DNA of 63,454 nt, the filler included, from Hyphochytrium catenoides (taxonomy: Eukaryota > Protista > Hyphochytriomycota): the NCBI GenBank assembly GCA_900088475.1. It is 8 parts of 8 records of this genome, joined end to end, with 100 filler letters (N's around TTAATTAATTAA, not from the genome) between each part and the next. Parts side by side here need not be neighbours in the genome. Positions count along the whole stretch, not along the records: positions 26,205 to 43,358 come from FLMG01000962.1; 7 more parts are not named here. One strand, 5' to 3'. The first letter of the stretch is position 1, and each line of letters opens with the position of its first letter. Position numbers and translations under genes: made by a program. Below are positions 28,597 to 41,500 of the stretch, piece by piece. The notes below the pieces were generated by a model. That model worked only from the letters and a program-made list of their open reading frames with translations, was not told where the DNA came from and made no database searches.

Positions 28597-31500
28597 CAAC
28601 GGCTGTGAAGAACGGCGGGCAGCAAGAGATGGCAGCGGAGAGGATCCGAGCGGTGATAGAGAGCGCGGTTGATGGCATCCTGGTCATCGACTCTTCCGGT
28701 ATAGTAGAGGAGTATAACCCTGCAGCTCGCAGGATTTTTGGCTACGAGAAAGAGGAAGTTCTGGGCCAGAATGTAAAGATGCTGATGCCGCCTCCCTATC
28801 GGGAAGGGCACGACGGCTTTATCCATCGTTATTTGCAGACCGGAGAAAAGCGAGTTATCGGAATTGGGAGGAAGGTGGTTGGCAGGCGGAAGGATGGGTC
28901 AACTTTCCCGATGGATCTCTCCGTGTCTCAGATGAAAGTTGGGGAGAGCATCAAGTTTACTGGGATCGTTAGAGACACCAGTGAACAAGAAATGGCAGCG
29001 GAGAGAGTCAGAGCGGTGATAGAGAGTGCCGTGGATGGCATACTGGTCATTGACACCTCAGGGACTGTAGAAGAGTACAACCTTGCTGCGTGTCGCATGT
29101 TTGGCTATGCGAAAGAAGAAGTGCTGGGCCAGAATGTGAAGATGCTGATGCCCTTTCCTTATCGTGACAAACATGATGAGTTTATCAAACGTTACCTTCA
29201 AACGGGCGAGAAGAAAGTAATCGGCATCGGGCGAAAGGTGGTAGGTAAAAGGAAGGATGGTTCCACCTTCCCGCTTGACCTTTCAGTCTCACAGATGAAG
29301 GTCGGACAAAGCATCAAGTTTACGGGGATCGTTAGGGATATTAGCGAGCAAGAGATGGCCGCTGAAAGGATCAGAGCTGTCATAGAAAGCGCAGTAGATG
29401 GGATCCTGGTCATTGATTTCTCAGGATTGGTAGAGGAATACAATCCAGCGGCAAGGGAACTCTTCGGCTACTCTACAGAAGAAGTGCTTGGGCAGAACGT
29501 GAAGATGCTCATGCCCCCTCAGTACAGAGAGCACCACGACGGGTACATACAAAGCTACCTTCGGACAGGCGTAAAGAGGGTGATAGGAATAGGCAGAAGA
29601 GTGATTGGGCTGCGGAAGGATGGCTCTACTTTCCCTATGCACCTCTCGGTGTCAGAAATGAAGATCGGCAATAGCATCAAGTTCACTGGCATTGTTAGGG
29701 ATATGAGCAAGGAGCTTGAAGCGATGCGGATGAAGGAGCACGCGGAGTCAGAGAGTAAAGCAAAGAGCGAGTTTCTCTGCAACATGAGCCATGAGTTCAG
29801 AACTCCTCTCAATGGCATCATGGGCACAGCCAGCCTCCTCTACGAACAGGCAGAAACGGAGGGAACCAAGGAATGTGCAGATATCATTCTCACCTCTTCT
29901 CGAGCGCTCTTATCCATTGTCAATGATCTGCTGGACTATAGCAAGCTGGCAGCTGGGAAGATGGTGCTCGTGGCTGAGCATTTTGACCTGTTGCTTGCCA
30001 TGGAAAACGTCGTAGATCTGCTCTATGGGGAGGCCAACAAGAAGGGCCTTCTCCTCTATCTTGACTTCCCTCCTGACATTCCCCGATGCTACTATGGAGA
30101 TAGTGGAAGGATTAGACAGATTGTCCTGAACTTTGTCTCCAACAGCCTGAAGTTCACCAGGAAGGGGCATATAGCCATCAAAGTTCGCGGAGAAAGTAAG
30201 GACGCTTCTTCTCCCAGTCCAGGAAACTCGTTTCGTCCCCATCCCGTGGAGGCCATGGCGCCGCCCGGAGACGACCTTACTTCTCCGCAGTCCTGCGGTC
30301 AGCGTATAGTCTTACATCTATCAGTGGAGGATACAGGCATCGGTATTCCAGAAGAGAAAAAGGATGTCTTGTTTGAGCGCTTCGCACAGCTGGACAACTC
30401 ACAGACTAACGGCGGAACAGGCATTGGTCTCTCGATCTGCAAGCACTTAGCGGCTCTGCTGGAAGGTGAAGTGACTGTGGAGAGTGAGGTTGACAGTGGA
30501 AGCACATTCACACTTTCCCTCTCCCTTCCCGTGGCTGAAGAAGAGGAAGAAGAAGCAAAGTTCTCTGGCCTGGCAGTAGCTTCCCCATCTTGCTCTTTTC
30601 TAGAGCCAGACTTACAAAGAAAGAAAGCAGAAGGTGGCTGCCCCTTCGTGAAGAGCTCAGAGGGTGGCTGTCCCTTCGTCAAAAGCTCCATTTCTGACGT
30701 CACGTCCACAACCACCGATGAGGGTAGCAGCAGGATGATGGCCATGATGAGGCGCGAACGCAAAAAGACTAGCCGAGAGCTTCCAAGAACTATGGGTAGG
30801 AACAGTCCTGGCAGTAGAGAAGATGAGGAACAGGGAGGCGAAATAGTTGCGGCAACAACATCGAAACGGAAGAAAAGGCTGCTGTTTATCACACAGAGAA
30901 TACAGAGCTGGCTTCCTATTGCCAGGTATTGTGAACGCGGTCTTCAGGTAGCTGAGTCGTGTCAGGTTGTTGGCTCTATCTCTGAGGCGAGAACGGCAGC
31001 AGCAGAAGGGTTCTCAAAGGTCCTTTTCTCAACTTCGTCTTCAGTCCAGAGAGGGGAAGAAAGGAAGAGCTGCTTTAAGGATAGTCTTGGTGGGTTAAAA
31101 CCCTCTTCCACCACCTCAGCCACCCCAGCTTTCCATGCAGTGTTAATTGACCAGACCATTATCGCTCAGCATCCGACTCTCACGCAGTTTTTCACTGAGG
31201 AGCTACGAAGAGCTCACAAGGACCTAGATCTTCCTTCCCCTATCTTTATTTATGTGTCCAACGGTCAGGTGCATGGACAAGAGGAAGGGAAGGACATTCC
31301 CATCTCCTCTCCATTGAGGTTCTCTGCGCTGGAGGCCCTGATGGCCGCAGTTGATCAGCGGCTTCTCGATATTTCTTCGTCTTCTGCTTCTTTGGCTTCC
31401 CCATGTTCTCCTTCCTCCTCGATTTCGGGGTCTCCGCCATCATCTCCACTGAGTACAAAGCAGTCACCTTTGGGTTTTGACTTGGACAGCAATCCTTCTT

Positions 31501-32057
31501 TATCGGGAGCCACGGGTGCCTTGTCAAGGAGAGCCAGTCAAGTGCCTAATCTTTCAGATCCTCCTCCCGGAGCGCGGTATATATTCACTGGGACACGGAT
31601 ACTCTTAGCTGAAGACTGCATAGTAAATCAAAAGGTGGCGACTATGCACCTCAAGCGCCTAGGATGTGCGGTTGACACCGTGGCCAATGGAAGTGAGGCA
31701 GTGAAGAAGTTGCAGGAGAACAACAGCTATGACATCGTGCTGTTGGACATCCATATGCCTGTCATGGACGGGTTTACGGCAGCGAGGAAGATAAGAGAAG
31801 AGGAAGCGAAAAGGCAACAGAAAAAGCCCATTCCTCTAGTTGCTCTCACCGCTTCTGTCATGTCCAGTACGCGAAGCGAATGTACTCTGGCTGGGATGAA
31901 TTGGTTCATCAGCAAGCCGGTCGCTGCAGAGGTATTCCTGGAGCTGCTTCAAAGATACGTTCCACATCTAGCCCAGCAAGTGTCGGAGCCCGCGGGCACG
32001 AAGAAATTGTACAAGAAGTCATCCTCGTCGACAAGGAAGACAGAGGGGGCAAGGTAA
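28597..32057 (+). CDS. Hybrid sensor histidine kinase: 3x FixL-type PAS, HisKA, HATPase, degenerate receiver, receiver. No intron seen. The true start may lie in or before the N gap (first visible ATG at 28629).
   Basis: Three PAS/PAC repeats; H-box EFLCNMSHEFRTPLNGI; N-box QIVLNFVSNSLKFT; G1 DTGIGI; F LFERF; G2 GGTGIGLSI; receiver RILLAED..DIVLLDIHMPVMDG..VALTAS..FISKP. Confidence 0.95.
28623..29705 (+). repeat. Three tandem 363-nt coding repeats (121-aa PAS units)
   Basis: QEMAAER(I/V)RAVIESAVDGILVID recurs with ATG at 28629, 28992 and 29355. The proteins are near-identical, with many synonymous differences. Confidence 0.95.
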
Positions 32058-33221
32058 CAGCTCCGACAGCAGCGCCAACTTCTTCTTTTGGTCTAAAGAT
32101 TTCGAGGCACGTACCGACGCCCCAACAGAGGCAGAGTGGGGGTCTCAAGAACACGTTGGCAGCCTTATCACAAAGTTGACTCTCCAGCCTTGCTAATGAC
32201 GTAGGGGAAAACGCCGCATGAGTTCATCATTGGCACAAGAAGCATGATGGATAGTCCCTACCATCTGCCGCTAGGATGCCGCAAGAATTCCTTAAAGCAG
32301 AGAGCAGAAGACGAGCAGAGGAGAGAGATGACGGGCTGTTGCCGACTGCGTTTTGTTAGCTCCTGTCGTTGAGCTGTAAAGACGAGCAAGCTGTAATCCT
32401 TACGAAGGAATAAGGGAGTGAGTCGAGTAGGAACTTCTATGTAAGTCAGAGGCTCAAGATCTCAATTGCTGGCTTCACGGAGCATGTCAATGCTGGTACT
32501 ATGTCTAATGAAAAGTGGTCTTCAAAATATCTTGCCCAATGGTAACATTCGCGGTTTAGATCTAGCTGAAGTGGTGTGCCTGGCGTAGCTGATGGGCAAC
32601 TTAGTCTGGGCCGTGGCAATGGAGGACAAGAGTAGGACCTTCCTGCTGCCTTATAGCTCAACAAGAAGAGTGTTGATAGGTGCGAGGGCCCTGTCCGTAG
32701 ACTTATACATGGCTCATATGCTAAGTGCTAGTTAGCGGTTAGGGATAGAACATTGGGTCATTCTGCACCGAGAGGACAAGCGCAGATATTCATTTGGTCA
32801 CATTGAAGGAGGGAAGAGTAACGATATATATTAATAGTGATGATAGCTCGATCGTCCCGACCGAATCGAGTCTCTCACTCCCTGCAAAGTGGCCACGCTG
32901 TTGGGGAGAAGCTTCTGAGGCTGTGCGGCCGATGTGACTCCACCGAGCAACGAGATGCAGAGGGCGCATTGGGGTGGCCATAACATCGCTACGGATTTGG
33001 TGATGAAGNNNNNNNNNNNNNNNNNNNNNNNNNNNNNNNNNNNNNNNNNNNNNNTTGCAGTAGCCACAGGCACATGAGAAGGCACCAATACAAAGGAGAC
33101 CTCAAATGGGGTGGCTGCTTGCGATATCTGCTTCAGGCCGCACTCCCAAGCAAACACAGCCGCTCGGTTCTATTTTCCTCTCTGCCTGCACCTGTTTCCT
33201 GCCTGTGGTGACAACTAACGG

Positions 33222-34433
33222 CTAAAGCGGACGCGCAGCTCGAGTGGAGGACGACCTTGAGCGCGAGGAGGACTGGTTGTGGACTACCACTGGTGCAGGA
33301 CTGGAGATGATGCTGTAGAAGAAAGAGAATGGCATCCTCCCTGACGTAATCAACGTTGCCTCTGCGCAGGGTACGTCTACGGCAACATGTTCTGGGACTA
33401 GCGTCGCGTAGGTCGTTATTGGCAATCCTGTTGCTCTTCTTCCGTCTTCTTCTGAGCTTCTATTGATATCCTTGGCGCTCATCAGAAGAGATGAAGTCGT
33501 TCCCTTCTTTCCAAAGGTGGTGTCCGCGCTACTGGAGAGGAAGTGTCGCTGGACCCAGAAACCGACACAAGCTAGAAGGAGAAGAGAAAGAATAATGATC
33601 ACCGTCAGCAAAATCGTCCATACATCATCACTGTCAGACGAAGAAGACTGCGGCTCTGCCTTCTTCCTATCGTCTTTATCTACTGGTGGAGCCGTTGCAG
33701 TACTGGCAGCCGACCCTTTTGCTTCCTCTCTCTGGCCAGCTACTCCTTGGCTGGGAACCGCAGATTCGGAGTTAGCTCTGCCCTCAGAACCCGAAGGAAG
33801 CTTGCTTGCTTGGGTAACGACTTCATTGCAGCTTTCTGCGGACGAGGAGACTTGTCCAACAAGAAGCCGATCTAAAAGGCACTGACAGTAGAGTAAAGCT
33901 TTCTGCTTCTCAGTCTGGGATAAAGTAGTCGTCGACCCGGTTGAAGCTGTAGGTGGCCTTCCTCCTCCACCGAGGTTTATGACCTTCTCTGGTCCCAAGG
34001 AAGTGGCAGAAGGAACTGTGGATGGGCTTTGGGTTTGAAGATCAGCAGCTTCAAGCGCCCTTCCTCCTGCCTGGGAAACCTTCGAATTGTTGCTCCTCGA
34101 GGCAGAAATTGAACAAGATTGACAGCCATTTAAAGCAGGTGTGAAGACACAGCTTGCAAGGGCACCACTCTCCTCTTGGAGGCACTTTTTCGCCATTGAG
34201 CTATTAAATACGTTTTGCGCTTGGTAGCAGGAGCAGGCCCGTTGGGCAAAGTCAATGTCAAAGACCCGCTCTAGGCCGCCTCCTGGTCCGCACTCCGCTG
34301 TAAGATTAAAAGGAGGAGATGGCGCGAAGTCAGCACTTAGTCTTGGAACTAAGTTTGCGCACATCAAGGCGTAAGCAGCCAGGAGGCCGAGGAAAGGAGA
34401 AGGACACTTTCGACAAAATGCTAGCCATGCCAT
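33222..34433 (-). CDS. Intronless type I membrane protein with a Cys-rich ectodomain, unknown function
   Basis: 403-aa non-repetitive ORF: N-terminal hydrophobic signal (FLGLLAAYALMCA), Cys domain, S/T-rich stalk, TM segment VWTILLTVIIILSLLLLACVGFWV, cytoplasmic tail. A paralog lies at 42.5 kb. Confidence 0.8.
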   Translation of the reverse strand: MAWLAFCRKCPSPFLGLLAAYALMCANLVPRLSADFAPSPPFNLTAECGPGGGLERVFDIDFAQRACSCYQAQNVFNSSMAKKCLQEESGALASCVFTPALNGCQSCSISASRSNNSKVSQAGGRALEAADLQTQSPSTVPSATSLGPEKVINLGGGGRPPTASTGSTTTLSQTEKQKALLYCQCLLDRLLVGQVSSSAESCNEVVTQASKLPSGSEGRANSESAVPSQGVAGQREEAKGSAASTATAPPVDKDDRKKAEPQSSSSDSDDVWTILLTVIIILSLLLLACVGFWVQRHFLSSSADTTFGKKGTTSSLLMSAKDINRSSEEDGRRATGLPITTYATLVPEHVAVDVPCAEATLITSGRMPFSFFYSIISSPAPVVVHNQSSSRSRSSSTRAARPL

Positions 34434-37400
34434 TCGTCCGTGACCTATAGTCTCTATGTTTATCCAACTGTCCGATGAGATTCAAGTGAAGAGTTAGCTG
34501 CGAGGGATGTCAGAGGTGACGAGGAGCAAGCAGCAAAGATTGATCCCGTCCATGCCGAGAGAGGGAAAAGCTCAGTAGAATGGGCAATGCTGTCTCCTGC
34601 GATAAAGAGCGAGCTCACCAAGAAGGCACTATAAAGCACTCATGTAGATGGAGTTTCGACGGCGAGCAACCACTGCGCAAGACTCAAGATGTAGGAGGGG
34701 AGAGGACTCCAAGTCTTTTTTGACCAAGGCACAGAAGCTGTGCCCGAGAAACGGAAGCAGGAGGTAAGAAGGAGCAGCCAGAGACGGAAGATCGGGAGAG
34801 CCAGATATCACCGCTAATGTAATATGGGACAGAACAATGGACGGAGTAAGAAGTGTAGCAGATAGTTACAGGTCAAGAGCCAGAAGCTTGGCAGAAAAAG
34901 AGGGGCGAAGAGGATTTTATGCACCCTAGGACCGGTGCTTTAATTACAATGGAAGCTGCTGGCAGCATGGCGAGGTTAAACTGATGTCATGACAGAGACA
35001 CAAGGCTGAAGGATAGCGTTCTCTAGTCAGTCATACTAGCTCTACTGCTACCTTATTAAGCTACAGCACGGGGTGCGTTCCTCGCGGCGGAAATGTCAGC
35101 TCCCCGCTCCACTCCTCCTGCGTTGATGTGGTTAGTAGGGTTTAGGGTAGAGCAAGAGTTCATGCCAAAAAAGACAGGAATGTCAAAGTCCGCGAAGAAC
35201 AAGAGGCCTTGCAAGTAACAAGTGATTCTGCCTACTCTTAGCACCAGCCACTCCCTATTAGATCTACTCCTTCCCACACTCTAGCCCTATGAGTCAGAAG
35301 TACGTTGTAACTTCCCCCGTACTTCGGTACTTCTACTGCTACAGCCTTTAGCCTTTGCTACTTCTACAGCCAGATGAGGCGTGGTTCTACTTTCGTCTCG
35401 TTATTGCAGAGTGCAAAGGAAATGTCATGGCGCTGCCTGTCTCTGCAGCCACGCTGACTAGTTCTACTGACTACTATGGCAAGACCTAAGACCTCGGAGC
35501 TCAACCAAGCCCGCCTTATGAGCAGCAAGTAATGGAGTTGACGGACGGAGCGGAAGGGTTGAAAATTGTCTAGAGGTCTCATCACCCGGCTCACCGTCCA
35601 CTTGAGGAACAGAGGTGCTCGAGGTCTCGAGGTTCTATCCTCTTCTTCTCCCTCACTCACTGCCTTGGCCAGTGGCAACTTTAGTGGCTTGGAGCTGGGA
35701 CGGAAAAGGTCTTCCATCTGGAATCGAGCACATCGTCACCGTCATCAGACAAGCATTAGCTTTCTATATTCTAGATTTGTCAAGACTCAGCGGACTCAGC
35801 CAGAAACGGAAGCTTTGGACCAGGCCGCGCTCTCTTCCTTGTGTACGTGCAGCCAAGTATCCGCGGGTACTTGTATAAGTCCTGAAGTCGCTGTTCTGCT
35901 AGAAGTCTTACTATTTACCACGGTATCCCCTTGACCAGCAACTCTTCCTTCACGCTACTTACTACTAACACAATCCATTACTACTGTTTTACTTGGGTGC
36001 CGACGAAGATAACGATATAGATTCCCTGTAGGAGTTTGTCACCTTCACTACCTGTACACGGTACGACCTATTGTGCTCCTGTCTCCTTCAGAACCCGTAC
36101 AGCTCTGAACTCTGACACCTCTCGGAGGTCGAGGAGGACCCGGACTGTCGCGCCCCCAGCAAAGGCTGCCGCCAGTCTACATCATTAACAAAGCTTCGAA
36201 GCACAGGAAAGCTACTCTCATCACCTCTCAAATCAAGGATGCCAGGTACATGTGTGTATCGAAGAAGTTCGGCGTCCATTGCAAGCAATGTTGCGGAGAG
36301 CAAGCAGCGGCGGTGGCACCTGGACGAGGAGCATAAAGGAAAAAGTCTGAGCCACATACACACACGTGGAGTAATAAAACCGCAACAATGTGTGTGTCTA
36401 CTCTACCAATGTGCAATGATAGAAGCATCAGAGGACTCTGTTCCCAGTGGCAAAGCAACAGATAGATCAGGCCGACAAAGATTTTTTACTGTTACTAGAA
36501 CGTTCGTGTGTAGCAGGATTTTCAACACCAATTTCCACGAAGCGTTAGCCAGCTGCCGACAGCTTTGTCCTAATAGAAGAAGGAGGTTTCTAACGAGAAC
36601 CGTTCGTTTTGATGACCGCATAAGCCTGGTAGGAGGGTTCCCGTCATGAGGCCCTTGAAACATCTGTCGAGCTATCTGTAGTCGTAGAAGTTCCTTGTTC
36701 TTGTGGTGGGCACTGTTTAGTAGGTTTTGCCCTGCGTTCTTCTTTTTACTTTTGGTGCCTCAGCAGCGTGGCAGAGTCTCAGTCCAACAGGGACAGCCAG
36801 AAGACTCTGCTGTTCTAGTGTGGGCACCGACACCGTACTAAGGCTTACTACCTCCTTCTATCTCTCCCTTCCTCGTGCTCCATGACAGCCACTTTATTAG
36901 TACCATAATAACTTGTTTCCTGGGTTAATGCTCTTAGAATTGAACGCATACAGCACACCTTGTTATTATGACTGTACGACCCTCTTCTGGGAGCTCTGAA
37001 TCAACTTGTGTTGAATGTCTCTCCACAAGTACGTGTGCAGCTGCGGTCAGGTACTATTGACCAAGTAGTCTCGTCTGAAGTCACCTCCATTGAATGCAGG
37101 AGCTTGTTGCTAAGACAAGAGAGGTGCTCAATCATGTTATTGACGTAGATGCTATCAAGGTGCTCTTGATTGGGATGGTATGTACACGAAGTCCCGTCAG
37201 AACAGAACCCGCCTCGAGTAGTCATCCAAAAAATCCAAAGGCCTCTCATTTATCCAGACATCGGACTGCATCCCCCAATTAGAAGTACGTGACCTTATAG
37301 AAAATGTCTTATTATCAAATTATACAACTCTTATCAATGACCTGGACAGAGGAATGGTCCAGCAGGTAGCCTTTAGAACGAGCAGCAACAAAAGTCGGTT

Positions 37401-38372
37401 CATGCAGCTTTGGATAAAATATTCTTCGAGCTGCTAGACTGCTACCTACTGAGTGTCCAACACCACAGGGTTACTACTTGGCAACGTCGGCAACAAGCGC
37501 ATCGACGCATCGTCGTTACCTAGAGGCCACATCGGTCATCATCATCAATGTTGTTCCATCAATGAGTGATGAAAACTAAAGCACTTCTTCATTGAACAAT
37601 CAACAACCTCAGAAATCCCCTAGGTGCAGGGGCGTTGCCCCTTGTTCATAACTAACTTGAAACCCCCGAGATTAATATGTTTCTCCACGAATATCCTCGG
37701 TCCGTTAGTAGAGTAGGTAGGAAACTTAATGAAGACCCTCGAGATTAAGTCAGTCTCCATATGCGAACCGAAACTGACATTACCAAGCCAAAGGTCACAT
37801 CAGTCACATCACCAGGACGTAACTTCATTGCCAGTCTCATGAAGTCTGGAGCCTGCTGGAGCGCGAGCAAACTAGACCAGTCTGCCGTCTGCCATGACAC
37901 CATGAATAATAATCAGCCATCGTCGTGGCAGGGACAACAGCTTCACGAGCCTCGATCCTTCTTTGCGCTACTGGTGGCGGGTAGTTGCTGAGGCCCACTC
38001 CATAAGGCACCCTTGTTCTTTTGCGTAGTGTTCCCGCGTGGAGGAGAGAGCTACTTGTTGCCTCTATGATCGGCTGTCCCCATTTAACGTCGAGGAGACA
38101 CCACGCCAGCATCTGGCCTGGTCAACCATCCCATAATCAGTTCAGCTGGTCACTCTGTCTCCTTCAATAGGGTGCTGTCTTGGAGAATGGCGAGGAGGTT
38201 TGCTTCACGGCCTCAGATTTTCGATTCTACCGACTACTAGCAAAGAAAGACTTTCTCCCGAGGCAGCTGTATAGCCCAGAGGGAAGAAGCTACAGCGGCA
38301 TATTGCACAAGAGCCACTTCATTGATTGAGTCTCTCAGACCTATCGAAGCCACGGCGGGCTTGTCTTCATAG

Positions 38373-38516
38373 GAAATGCTTCAAGAGCCATTTTTCATCT
38401 TCTTCCTCATCGGAGCAGGCGTCTTCTACACCGCGGAAACCGAGGACTTCTACTATTTGGGATTAGGGGCCCTCCTCCTCAACTTCCTCGCGTTTCTAAT
38501 GATCACTTATCTTTGA
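38373..38516 (+). CDS. Probable terminal exon of an unidentified membrane protein (two short hydrophobic helices)
   Basis: After cttcatAG it reads EMLQEPFFIFFLIGAGVFYTAETEDFYYLGLGALLLNFLAFLMITYL*. Candidate upstream exons exist (e.g. ~37100-37177 ELVAKTREVLNHVIDVDAIKVLLIGM between AG and GT), but the full model is unresolved. Confidence 0.35.
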   Translation, partial: EMLQEPFFIFFLIGAGVFYTAETEDFYYLGLGALLLNFLAFLMITYL

Positions 38517-41500
38517 CCCTCCCACATGACGAGCTATGGAAGAGGTCAACATCACCATCGGAAGAAATATTAACTGAAACCAGGCTAAAGGCTGGAGGTT
38601 AATTGACCTACTCCTCGTCGCCTATCAACCCTCCTCTCTCGGCTATGCCACAGAGCAACGTCTGTCATCCATCTCTTTCTGGACTGTCTTTTGGTCTACT
38701 CAACTTCGGTCGAAGTGCCCAACTGCGGGATCGCTTTTAGAGGGCACCGTGACATATATTTTTGTCAATTGCCGCTTCTCAGCAAGACGGTCAATAGATA
38801 TTTTCGTTGCAAGCAACTCCCGTAAGCACTACTACGGTGCAGAAGAGCTCTTTACCTCTTCTTGGTCTTCATCTTCCTTGTCATGGGCGGGACGCGGTAC
38901 AAACAGGAGCTGATGTAGTGCGATTTTTCCCTCTTTGCCACTGTGTGTATGTTAGTCATCGTATGGAGTGTTCGTGTCTCTCAAGACAAGTAGTGGGCAG
39001 ACCCTTTCTCCAATAGTGATCTCCACATTATGTCTTAAGTACTATAGGTTGAGACGCGTAACAGGCGCTCTGGGTAGGCTACTACTGCGGATTATTGATA
39101 TTATCTAAAGGATCTAACGGTTAATCTTTTGACTTCATGAGGTGGTGTTATGACTTTCCTGCCCGCGGATCCCACTGACTAACCAACGAGGAGGGACTGC
39201 TTGGCATAAGTGAGTCTAGTTGAGTTGCAAACCACGAGGACGAAGAAGGGGCAGAGCCCGTATTATCGCTCTTATCTCACAGGCTGAACAGTGCCGAGCT
39301 TCACGACCTTTCCAGTAACCTCAGTATTTGCCTTCTATCCTCGTTCGCCTGCCTTTTGCATATCTGCAGAATCTCCGGCAATGTTCTAAGAGCCAGAGTC
39401 AGTCGGCGGGGTTTATCATCTTCATCTTGTATGGGCTCTTCATCCCTTCCACCCACCTTCTTTCTTCTTCTTCTGTTGTGAAGAAGTCCGCGTAGCGTCA
39501 ATGAGAAGAAACCATCATTTCGGAACCACCACCCTTTGCCTGTGGTGGGCATAGATGCGTGTGACACGGACAGACATCGAGCCGGAGGAGCGTTACAATG
39601 GCTGAGGGCCCGATCCAGTCAGAGGAACCTGCACGACCCTGTTACAATGCGAAGACGAACAAAATCGGTACGCCACCATCACAAAGGGCCTCAGAAGGGC
39701 ACGGGGAGTACTACATGCTAGTCTACAGAGAGGATGCACGCCAAGTAGAGGAGGAAGGAGGACTACTGCCAAATGAGGCGAAAGGGACAAAAGTCAGGTG
39801 GAAGTGGAGTGAGAGAGAAAGGTGAGAAAGAAGGATAGAGATTGCAGTCAACTCTTGGGTGGGATGCAGAAAGTGAGCCGGGCAATGTCACCCACCACCT
39901 TTATTGACCCATAAGACAAGAGACTGATGAGTGGAACAATCGCACAGGAAGGGGGAACAAGGAGAACAGAATTCTTGTTTGAGTGGACAGAGTCCTGCGA
40001 AGAAGTGCCGGTGATGGGCAATCAGGGTCGAGCTGAGACCCAGTAATAGTAGATAGAAGCAATCTACGGGTACAATAAAAGAAGAAGAAGTCAGGAGGGA
40101 GGCGCATGAGAGAAATACAAAGGAGAAGCAGGAACCAGGAGGACAACAACAAGGATAATCGGAAGAGGAGAGAAAATAGCTAGGTATCTCTCAGTAGTAG
40201 CCTTGTTTTGCTGATCTTCCTGACGGGAGACAACAGGTATCTTAACGCAGGTCATTATTAGAGATAGGGCGTTGTTCCTTGTGGTATTAGCAAATCATCA
40301 TGCAGTCGTCAGCCATCATACTACTACTAAGGAAAAAGAGTAGAGCTATGGAGGAGAAGGACGAAGATTGAACGAGGACACGTTAAATTATGAGGGCTGA
40401 CACTCCTTAGCTGGCTGCACGCTGCCTGTACAAAAGTAGACAATGTTGTTGATGAACTAGTAGGAGAGAGACCACCATGTTGATTAAGGCCCCAGCATCG
40501 ACAGGCGTCCTTCTCCTTCTCAACCGTCAGCCAGGAAGGAAAGGGAACAGTTCAAGGAGAAAGAGTTGAGACAAAGAAGCAACAGAGGCAGAGCGCACGT
40601 CGTGAGGTTGATGGGAGAGACTGTTGGCTAAGCCAACCGCGCATGCAAAAGGGAGGGAGAGAGACAGACAGAGAGAGAGAGAGAGAGAGACAGAGAGAGA
40701 GAGAGAGTGAAGAGAGAGAGAGAGGGAGAGAGAGTCCCAGACTGAGAGAGAGAGGGACAGAGAGTCCCACGCTGCGCGATCCGAAGAAGAGAGGAGGAAG
40801 AGTTCTTAGCTCTCTTGTGCCTCTGCCCTCACAGTGACCGCGGGCGCCGATCCTGTGACCCAGGGAACGGCCATCAGAACCCAGAGCTCCACGTGCTAGA
40901 CGTATTACTATGACCAGCGGGAATAGCGCCATAGCGATCCTCAACCTTGCGTGTATTACTACTCCTAACCTGCGCCTTTTGGTAACGGCGGTCCGACGTC
41001 CCTCAGTCACCCCCCAGCACCCCGAGGAGAAGGTTTAGGAAGCTTCAGTATCAAAGGCACCGGAATGCTAGGGTTTGTGGTGTATCACTGTCGGGGCGGA
41101 ATAGGGTCAGGTAGTATCAAGTGTGCTATCATCATGGAGGAGACGGAGGAGAGACAGACAAGAGGAAAGGAGGAGGAGGGACAAGAGACAGGGAAGGCGG
41201 GGCCAATGAGACAGATTTGAAGAGAGGTACATAAGATGAATGACTGTAAGTAATAGTTTTAGGAGACAGAGCGTGGCAGAGGTAGGAAGGTGCTTGAAGG
41301 TGAGATGCATGTCAGAGTAATGGAAGTGCTGCCCTTCAGAGACATGGCAAGGAGGCACAGGACACCATGAGAGGAGAGAGAGAGAGAGAGAGAGAGAGAA
41401 GAGAGAGAGGAGAGAGAGGAGAGAGGGAGAGAGAGAGAGAAGAGAAAGGAGAGAGAGAGAGAGAGAGAGGAGAAAGGAGACAGAGGAAGAGAGAAGAGAA

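Follow-up and report, generated by a model that had tools for sequence, protein, structure and literature searches.

Does the hyphochytrid Hyphochytrium catenoides encode an oxygen sensor built from several FixL-type heme domains and, if so, is such a protein new? The question is raised by a stretch of 63 454 nt from assembly GCA_900088475.1 (the window, along which all positions are counted). The ~17 kb piece at 26205–43358 (FLMG01000962.1), which is the genome context seen in our study, contains a single long plus-strand open reading frame (ORF) that ends at 32057. The ORF is free of introns and its product is a protein of 1152 aa (translation of 28599–32054, which also sets the residue numbers used here). 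We consider this protein likely to be a cytosolic hybrid histidine kinase that senses O2 or another gas through three in-register FixL-type b-heme PAS units.

Three tandem FixL-type PAS units

Tandem Repeats Finder detected a 363-bp period over 28623–29520, and a repeat search placed three in-register copies at 28623, 28986 and 29349. On translation, the repeats form three units of 121 aa with no indels between them (aa 10–130, 131–251 and 252–372). Pfam recognized three PAS (E 7e-54) or PAS_9 (E 5e-49) domains, followed by HisKA, HATPase_c and Response_reg. A phmmer search of all PDB chains returned the heme domain of R. meliloti FixL as the top match of the repeats (1d06, E 1.1e-35, with the best alignment coming from PAS 2), ahead of B. 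japonicum FixL (E 1e-33 to 1e-30) and E. coli DosP (E 1e-19). These results bear out a preliminary description of the DNA, which had proposed three tandem FixL-type heme-PAS domains here from the motifs GQNVKMLMP, VIGIGR and RKDGSTFP; each motif is present in every copy. The same description had named characterized non-heme PAS domains as the relatives that would speak against its proposal, and the closest solved relatives are instead FixL heme domains.

Protein identity among the three repeats is 74–86 %, and PAS3 is the most diverged copy. The proportion of synonymous differences between repeats (pS) is 0.76–0.92, at which synonymous sites are saturated, and that of non-synonymous differences (pN) is 0.08–0.15. 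The triplication therefore appears to be old, with every copy maintained. In a quick tree the three units form one clade (SH-aLRT 99), which suggests that the copies were amplified within the lineage or have been homogenized. A mis-assembled repeat number was considered and is countered by an independent contig of 1109 nt that takes in the end of PAS1 and the two following units and extends into HisKA, although the assembly may itself have been built from the DNA runs.

Contigs from three DNA runs of the source organism were compared over 27600–32300, which revealed 24 base differences between runs within the ORF. All 15 inter-run variants in aa 1–650 are synonymous; in the linker further downstream, three are synonymous and six non-synonymous. 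The presence of only synonymous variants in the sensor and kinase core indicates that the gene is under selection.

Two contig forms of roughly equal depth were also observed in runs X1 and X2 over 28670–28805, within PAS1. They differ at seven sites, all of them synonymous third positions, and reflect an allelic haplotype or else a further, nearly identical copy.

Heme pocket and candidate ligand

Pocket positions were mapped through the phmmer alignments and a profile alignment, using BjFixL numbering, and the 16 positions checked in each repeat fit FixL in all three. Equivalents of the proximal His200 on F-alpha and of the distal, O2-contacting Arg220 on G-beta are retained in every unit (Table 1), as the preliminary description had read them. 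Val188, Met192, Tyr207, Ile216, Leu236, Phe249 and Gly251 are likewise unchanged in all three, and Val stands in place of Ile215 and Ile238. The distal residues are thus V, I, L and V in every unit, as in RmFixL; they are hydrophobic and include no Met ligand. Judged from these residues, it is highly probable that all three units bind heme. E. coli DosP (EcDOS), the next best solved relative, belongs to the same heme-PAS cluster (PMC10468136), but its heme is six-coordinate, with Met as the distal ligand, and its output is a phosphodiesterase. The window protein has Ile in place of this Met, and a five-coordinate, FixL-like heme is therefore expected.

An AlphaFold2 (AF2) model of aa 1–470, based on a 20-sequence alignment and with a mean predicted local distance difference test score (pLDDT) of 78, contains three canonical PAS units linked by 16-residue helices that start at an RD(T/I/M)S(E/K) junction. 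When a modelled unit was placed on BjFixLH with Foldseek, the target-normalized template modelling (TM) score was 0.94–0.95 and the root-mean-square deviation 0.9–1.1 Å (1dp6, 1drm and 2vv6). The fold is thus held in common with the rhizobial FixL proteins of R. meliloti (1d06/1ew0) and B. japonicum (1dp6, 1drm and 8js5), as are the proximal His, the distal Arg, the hydrophobic distal residues and an RD-x-(T/S)-E junction leading into a helix. However, FixL has one heme-PAS per chain (with an additional PAS-A without heme in BjFixL), its kinase is of the FixL class and FixJ is a separate protein, whereas the window protein has three heme-type units, a hybrid-class transmitter, a fused receiver and Ser at position 206 of PAS3.

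The Arg206 equivalent is Arg in PAS1 and PAS2 and Ser in PAS3, in agreement with what had been claimed. The R206A form of BjFixL reportedly keeps O2 binding but shows weaker inhibition in the off-state, and the residue is said to contribute to off-state coupling. R200 variants of SmFixL retain ligand binding and have altered signalling intermediates (PMC10765370). Across 603 related domains (see below), position 206 is occupied by N in 241, R in 65 and S in 19, and also by A, H and G. It is freely variable and therefore no defining mark of the FixL/DosP-type family, and R206S was rejected as a special feature of PAS3.

On balance, the pocket residues favour O2 as the physiological ligand. An alternative is that the same architecture, with heme bound, responds to NO, CO, heme iron redox or heme availability, or that the polarity is inverted and the ligand switches the kinase on. 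FixL and DosP heme-PAS domains form a single cluster (cluster 3) whose members serve varied outputs and ligands (PMC10468136). The Ser at position 206 of PAS3, two linker CPF motifs that resemble heme-regulatory motifs and a spacing between PAS3 and the H-box that lies off the main heptad series (see below) would also be consistent with this alternative. We nevertheless consider it unlikely, as the distal Arg, which hydrogen-bonds O2 in FixL, and the hydrophobic FixL distal pocket are kept in all three units, and O2 sensing is the function of the closest relatives with solved structures.

Spacing of the units and signal transmission

Among relatives of the window protein, the His-to-His distance between successive units was 121 aa in 36 cases, 128 in 184, 135 in 10 and 142 in one. 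A 121+7n series accounts for 231 of 282 spacings and, by modal value, for 104 of 115 proteins, counts that come from related sequences and hence do not represent independent events. Both spacings in the window protein are 121, the shortest class. This heptad quantization, together with the helical linkers of the model, suggests that the PAS units occupy a fixed register along a coiled-coil spine, with mechanical coupling between them.

Such coupling bears upon the proposal that only the kinase-proximal PAS3 signals, with PAS1 and PAS2 as dimerization or scaffold modules or as redundant copies in which the presence or absence of heme makes no difference to output. BjFixL and EcDosP do pair a heme-PAS with a second PAS that lacks a sensing heme (8js5 and the DosP entries), and PAS3 is the copy that has diverged most. 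However, no pocket residue, Arg206 included, has been lost from PAS1 or PAS2, the low pN stands against saturated synonymous sites, polymorphism is synonymous only, and a 121+7n register that is strict throughout the family speaks for all units being mechanically coupled. We therefore regard signalling by PAS3 alone as quite improbable. It is an equally doubtful idea that tandem FixL-type heme-PAS arrays, among which the window protein belongs to the 121-aa minimal-linker class, each form a single allosteric rod in which the several hemes of a dimer, in heptad-locked units, act together, and that in this protein the two CPF motifs of the linker might add an input from free heme. If this were true, the O2 response would be more sensitive or steeper than that of any single-heme sensor.

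In the AF2 model one unbroken helix (aa 370–417) runs from PAS3 through the H-box, SHEFRTPLN, which contains the phospho-acceptor His398. The N, G1, F and G2 boxes of HATPase_c are all present, with an insertion between the N and G1 boxes, and the receiver has a complete set of residues (the acidic pair E1005–D1006, Asp1050, Thr1084 and Lys1106). The protein thus has the full make-up of a hybrid histidine kinase, and the transmitter and receiver, for which a His–Asp phosphorelay had been proposed earlier, are complete at the level of sequence. No HPt domain was found in the ORF with Pfam. A soluble protein had also been suggested, and no transmembrane segment is visible in it.

Taken together, our results indicate that the protein is probably a dimeric cytosolic sensor carrying up to six b-hemes. 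On binding of gas, most likely O2 stabilized through the distal Arg, heme-edge contacts and the FG loop would move in each unit, and the change would travel along the RD-x-S-E junction helices and dimeric coiled-coil spine to the DHp domain, altering autophosphorylation of His398. The phosphoryl group would then pass from His398 to Asp1050, onwards to a separate HPt protein and finally to a response regulator encoded elsewhere in the genome. By analogy with FixL, it is an even chance that O2 switches the kinase off. With six hemes in each dimer, the dose response would most plausibly be shifted or sharpened in comparison with single-heme FixL.

Several points weigh against the protein being a multi-heme gas-sensing kinase of this kind. 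Heme, ligand and kinase activity are attributed to it from sequence and a model, no RNA run is listed for the source organism, and heme, ligand or kinase data for any tandem array were not found in the literature. PAS3, the unit adjacent to the kinase, is without the proximal Arg (Ser319). The kinase half falls outside the FixL class: the H-box differs from the AHELNQPL type that marks FixL-class transmitters, the best PDB relatives of aa 368–1152 are the hybrid kinases 7p8e and 6qrj, with 7z8n and HK853 as further solved relatives, and a FixL kinase is absent among the 60 PDB matches listed for this region. By these comparisons, the sensor is FixL-type and the output module is not. The distance from the His of PAS3 to that of the H-box is 85 residues, which does not fit the 75+7n series that 29 of 44 relatives follow, and the O2-off polarity of FixL is therefore not to be assumed. 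Finally, 92 bases just upstream of the visible ORF lie in an assembly gap, and further exons may be present upstream.

The linker between HATPase_c and the receiver gave no Pfam match even at E 10. Its tandem repeat encodes EGGCPFVKSS twice, and these contain the only two Cys-Pro dipeptides in the 1152 aa; both look like heme-regulatory motifs, in which Cys-Pro is combined with a hydrophobic residue. The doubling is a single duplication event, carries no statistical weight and has no counterpart in the Chromera homologue described below. Within aa 745–1000 (30831–31598), a strand/helix pattern (RLLFITQ ... AVLIDQT ... IFIYVSN) recalls a degenerate domain of receiver type placed before the true receiver, an arrangement that may be likened to plant cytokinin receptors. 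A pseudo-receiver between kinase and receiver had no Pfam support at E 10, and a single-sequence AF2 model of the region was uninformative (pLDDT 38).

Related arrays in bacteria and eukaryotes

A profile of the three repeats was run over the 120 best database relatives (P0001–P0120), in which it identified 603 domains. At least three FixL-type PAS domains with both His and Arg were found in 90 of the 120, with a maximum of 11, and many of these proteins also carry HisKA, HATPase_c and REC. Arrays of 3–11 such domains are common in bacteria, and eukaryotic carriers include Chromera velia, Bodo saltans, Diplonema papillatum and Colponema vietnamica. The preliminary description had placed the novelty of the gene in its lineage, in the triplication and in added motifs. 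The eukaryotic setting stands, as the flanks look eukaryotic, but the novelty was overstated because arrays of three or more units are common in databases, eukaryotes included, and a FixL-PAS array joined to a histidine kinase and REC is also present in C. velia, with four units.

The C. velia protein (A0A0G4HHW9, P0049), an uncharacterized histidine kinase, is 40 % identical to the window protein over 739 aa and likewise has tandem FixL-type PAS units, with His and Arg kept, followed by HisKA, HATPase_c and REC. It differs in that its four units are 130–138 aa apart and have Ala or Gly at residue 206. The window repeats and the Chromera repeats each form a clade of their own, and the quick tree hinted at an independent origin of the two arrays; however, a shared clade was not rejected by the approximately unbiased (AU) test (p-AU 0.69), and we do not claim independent origin.

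Bacterial multi-heme-PAS kinases, such as the Gimesia aquarii 'Sensor protein FixL' (P0030), a locus in a Planctomycetota metagenome-assembled genome (L001) and P0065, are 40–50 % identical to the window protein. They have 3–7 in-register units directly 5′ of HisKA/HATPase_c, often with REC and HPt, and in P0065 the three units all have Ser at position 206. These arrays differ in that their period is mostly 128 aa, longer by one heptad, that their linkers to REC are mostly short and that their genome context is prokaryotic, and no characterized member was found in the literature. FixL-type arrays of 9–13 units occur in B. saltans (P0027), D. papillatum (P0017), C. vietnamica (P0026) and the metagenomic 9xPAS-cyclases P0006 and P0007, with His in most units and Arg in many. 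P0006 has the same period of 121 aa as the window protein, but proteins of this group have no kinase core or have a class III cyclase, and their repeats are more diverged (scores of 50–130, compared to 250).

Queries with the transmitter, linker and receiver returned nothing above 45 % identity from a word index, an exhaustive search of 1.84 bn protein representatives and JGI metagenomes; the matches were generic histidine kinases and receivers, and no orthologue of this part of the protein was found in those searches. A literature search on eukaryotic or tandem FixL arrays produced nothing relevant. The FXL proteins of Chlamydomonas reinhardtii, eukaryotic FixL-like heme-PAS proteins that Murthy et al. 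are said to have described in FEBS Lett in 2012, reportedly bind heme and O2. The window protein is an orphan-lineage addition to a widespread and biochemically unexplored class of multi-heme-PAS kinases, and not a new kind of system.

Eukaryotic or bacterial gene

Apart from the few protists, the close relatives are bacterial (Planctomycetota, Acidobacteriota and Proteobacteria) and reach ~50 % identity at most. This similarity, an ORF without introns and the listing of no RNA run would fit a bacterial gene, present either on a contaminant contig or through very recent transfer without a working eukaryotic role. Our data make such an origin very unlikely. Read depth is even over the gene and its flanks in all three runs, and contigs connect PAS1 and the 3′ end of the gene to those flanks, which contain (CT)n/(GA)n tracts of 250–300 bp and ~8 kb without a sizeable ORF. 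The ~350-aa low-complexity linker and the insertion in HATPase_c also argue against a bacterial source, and searches of 185,579 prokaryotic species genomes, of 1.84 bn protein representatives and of JGI metagenomes gave nothing above ~50 % identity. Furthermore, that the domains carry only synonymous polymorphism shows that the gene is under selection in this organism. Long repeats, non-coding flanks and neighbouring Cys-rich membrane-protein ORFs are together not a bacterial layout.

Imperfect (CT)n/(GA)n tracts of 150–300 bp were located at 27273–27507, 40645–40796 and 41358–41641, and the plus strand is strongly purine-rich over 39.2–42.2 kb.

Gene boundaries and neighbouring features

The coordinates of the gene and of its neighbours are collected in Table 1. 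The assembly gap upstream of the ORF, between 28542 and 28597, is bridged in contigs from all three DNA runs by 92 nt, which is too short for a 363-nt unit; extra PAS copies hidden in the gap were therefore rejected. As the true length is 92 nt and not 54, the frame 5′ of the gap is out of phase, and a GTG start at 28491 was discarded as a gap artefact. In the corrected upstream frame, the 23 codons preceding the gap contain a stop and no ATG, so the start is either the ATG at 28629 or within the 92 nt. At most ~40 further N-terminal residues could thus be encoded in this exon.

Table 1. Positions of the kinase gene, its domains and neighbouring features in the window
Feature	Position	Strand	Details
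Assembly gap	28543–28596		54 N in assembly; true length 92 nt in contigs of three DNA runs
Hybrid kinase ORF	28629–32057	+	Three 121-aa repeats, HisKA, HATPase_c, low-complexity linker, receiver
First visible in-frame ATG, candidate start	28629–28631	+	MAAERIRAV...
Heme-PAS 1 (aa 10–130)	28626–28988	+	His71 (codon 28809–28811); Arg91 (codon 28869–28871); R206 equivalent Arg77
Heme-PAS 2 (aa 131–251)	28989–29351	+	His192 (codon 29172–29174); Arg212; R206 equivalent Arg198
Heme-PAS 3 (aa 252–372)	29352–29714	+	His313 (codon 29535–29537); Arg333; R206 equivalent Ser319 (29553–29555)
Helical linker into DHp/HisKA	29715–29957	+	Pfam HisKA aa 388–453; His398 codon 29790–29792
HATPase_c	30096–30527	+	N box aa 511, G1 (DTGIGI) 578, F 592, G2 (GGTGIGL) 605
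Low-complexity linker, ~350 aa	30546–31598	+	No family match
Tandem 30-bp repeat	30628–30688	+	EGGCPFVKSS x2 (aa 676–695); Tandem Repeats Finder
Receiver domain	31599–31946	+	Pfam Response_reg E 9e-20 (aa 1001–1116); PDB matches to hybrid-kinase receivers; Asp1050 at 31746–31748
Stop codon	32055–32057	+	
Cys-rich ORF, 403 aa, complete	33222–34433	-	Signal-peptide-like N-terminus, Ser/Thr-rich stretch, one transmembrane helix
Cys-rich ORF	42459–43406	+	Runs into the end of the piece

A second assembly gap, of 46 N, lies at 33009–33054 between the kinase gene and the first Cys-rich ORF. Neither the kinase nor the neighbouring 403-aa ORF is on record as a called gene, and an Rfam search gave no match. 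The two Cys-rich ORFs are paralogous and have in common a six-Cys domain of ~85 aa (38 % identity, E 3e-15). No homologue of the 403-aa ORF was found among 5.8 bn proteins, the only hits being weak Atlas neighbours, and the pair therefore looks like a lineage-specific family of surface proteins.

Short matching pieces occur in a 2025 soil metagenome; among them, contigs of 148–151 nt match the non-conserved linker of the kinase (31236–31589) with 2–5 mismatches, which suggests that the organism, or a close relative, is soil-dwelling.

Significance

Direct heme O2 sensors that feed two-component relays are well studied in bacteria, but barely in eukaryotes. The gene described here adds a clean, intron-free and easily expressed eukaryotic example, with no relative above ~50 % identity in the databases searched. 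Arrays of 3–11 or more heme-type PAS units are common, and no characterized one was found in the literature. The 121+7n spacing offers a concrete structural hypothesis, that of coiled-coil coupling between units, and the three-unit protein of H. catenoides represents a tractable case in which to study the effect of heme-sensor multiplication on the dose response.

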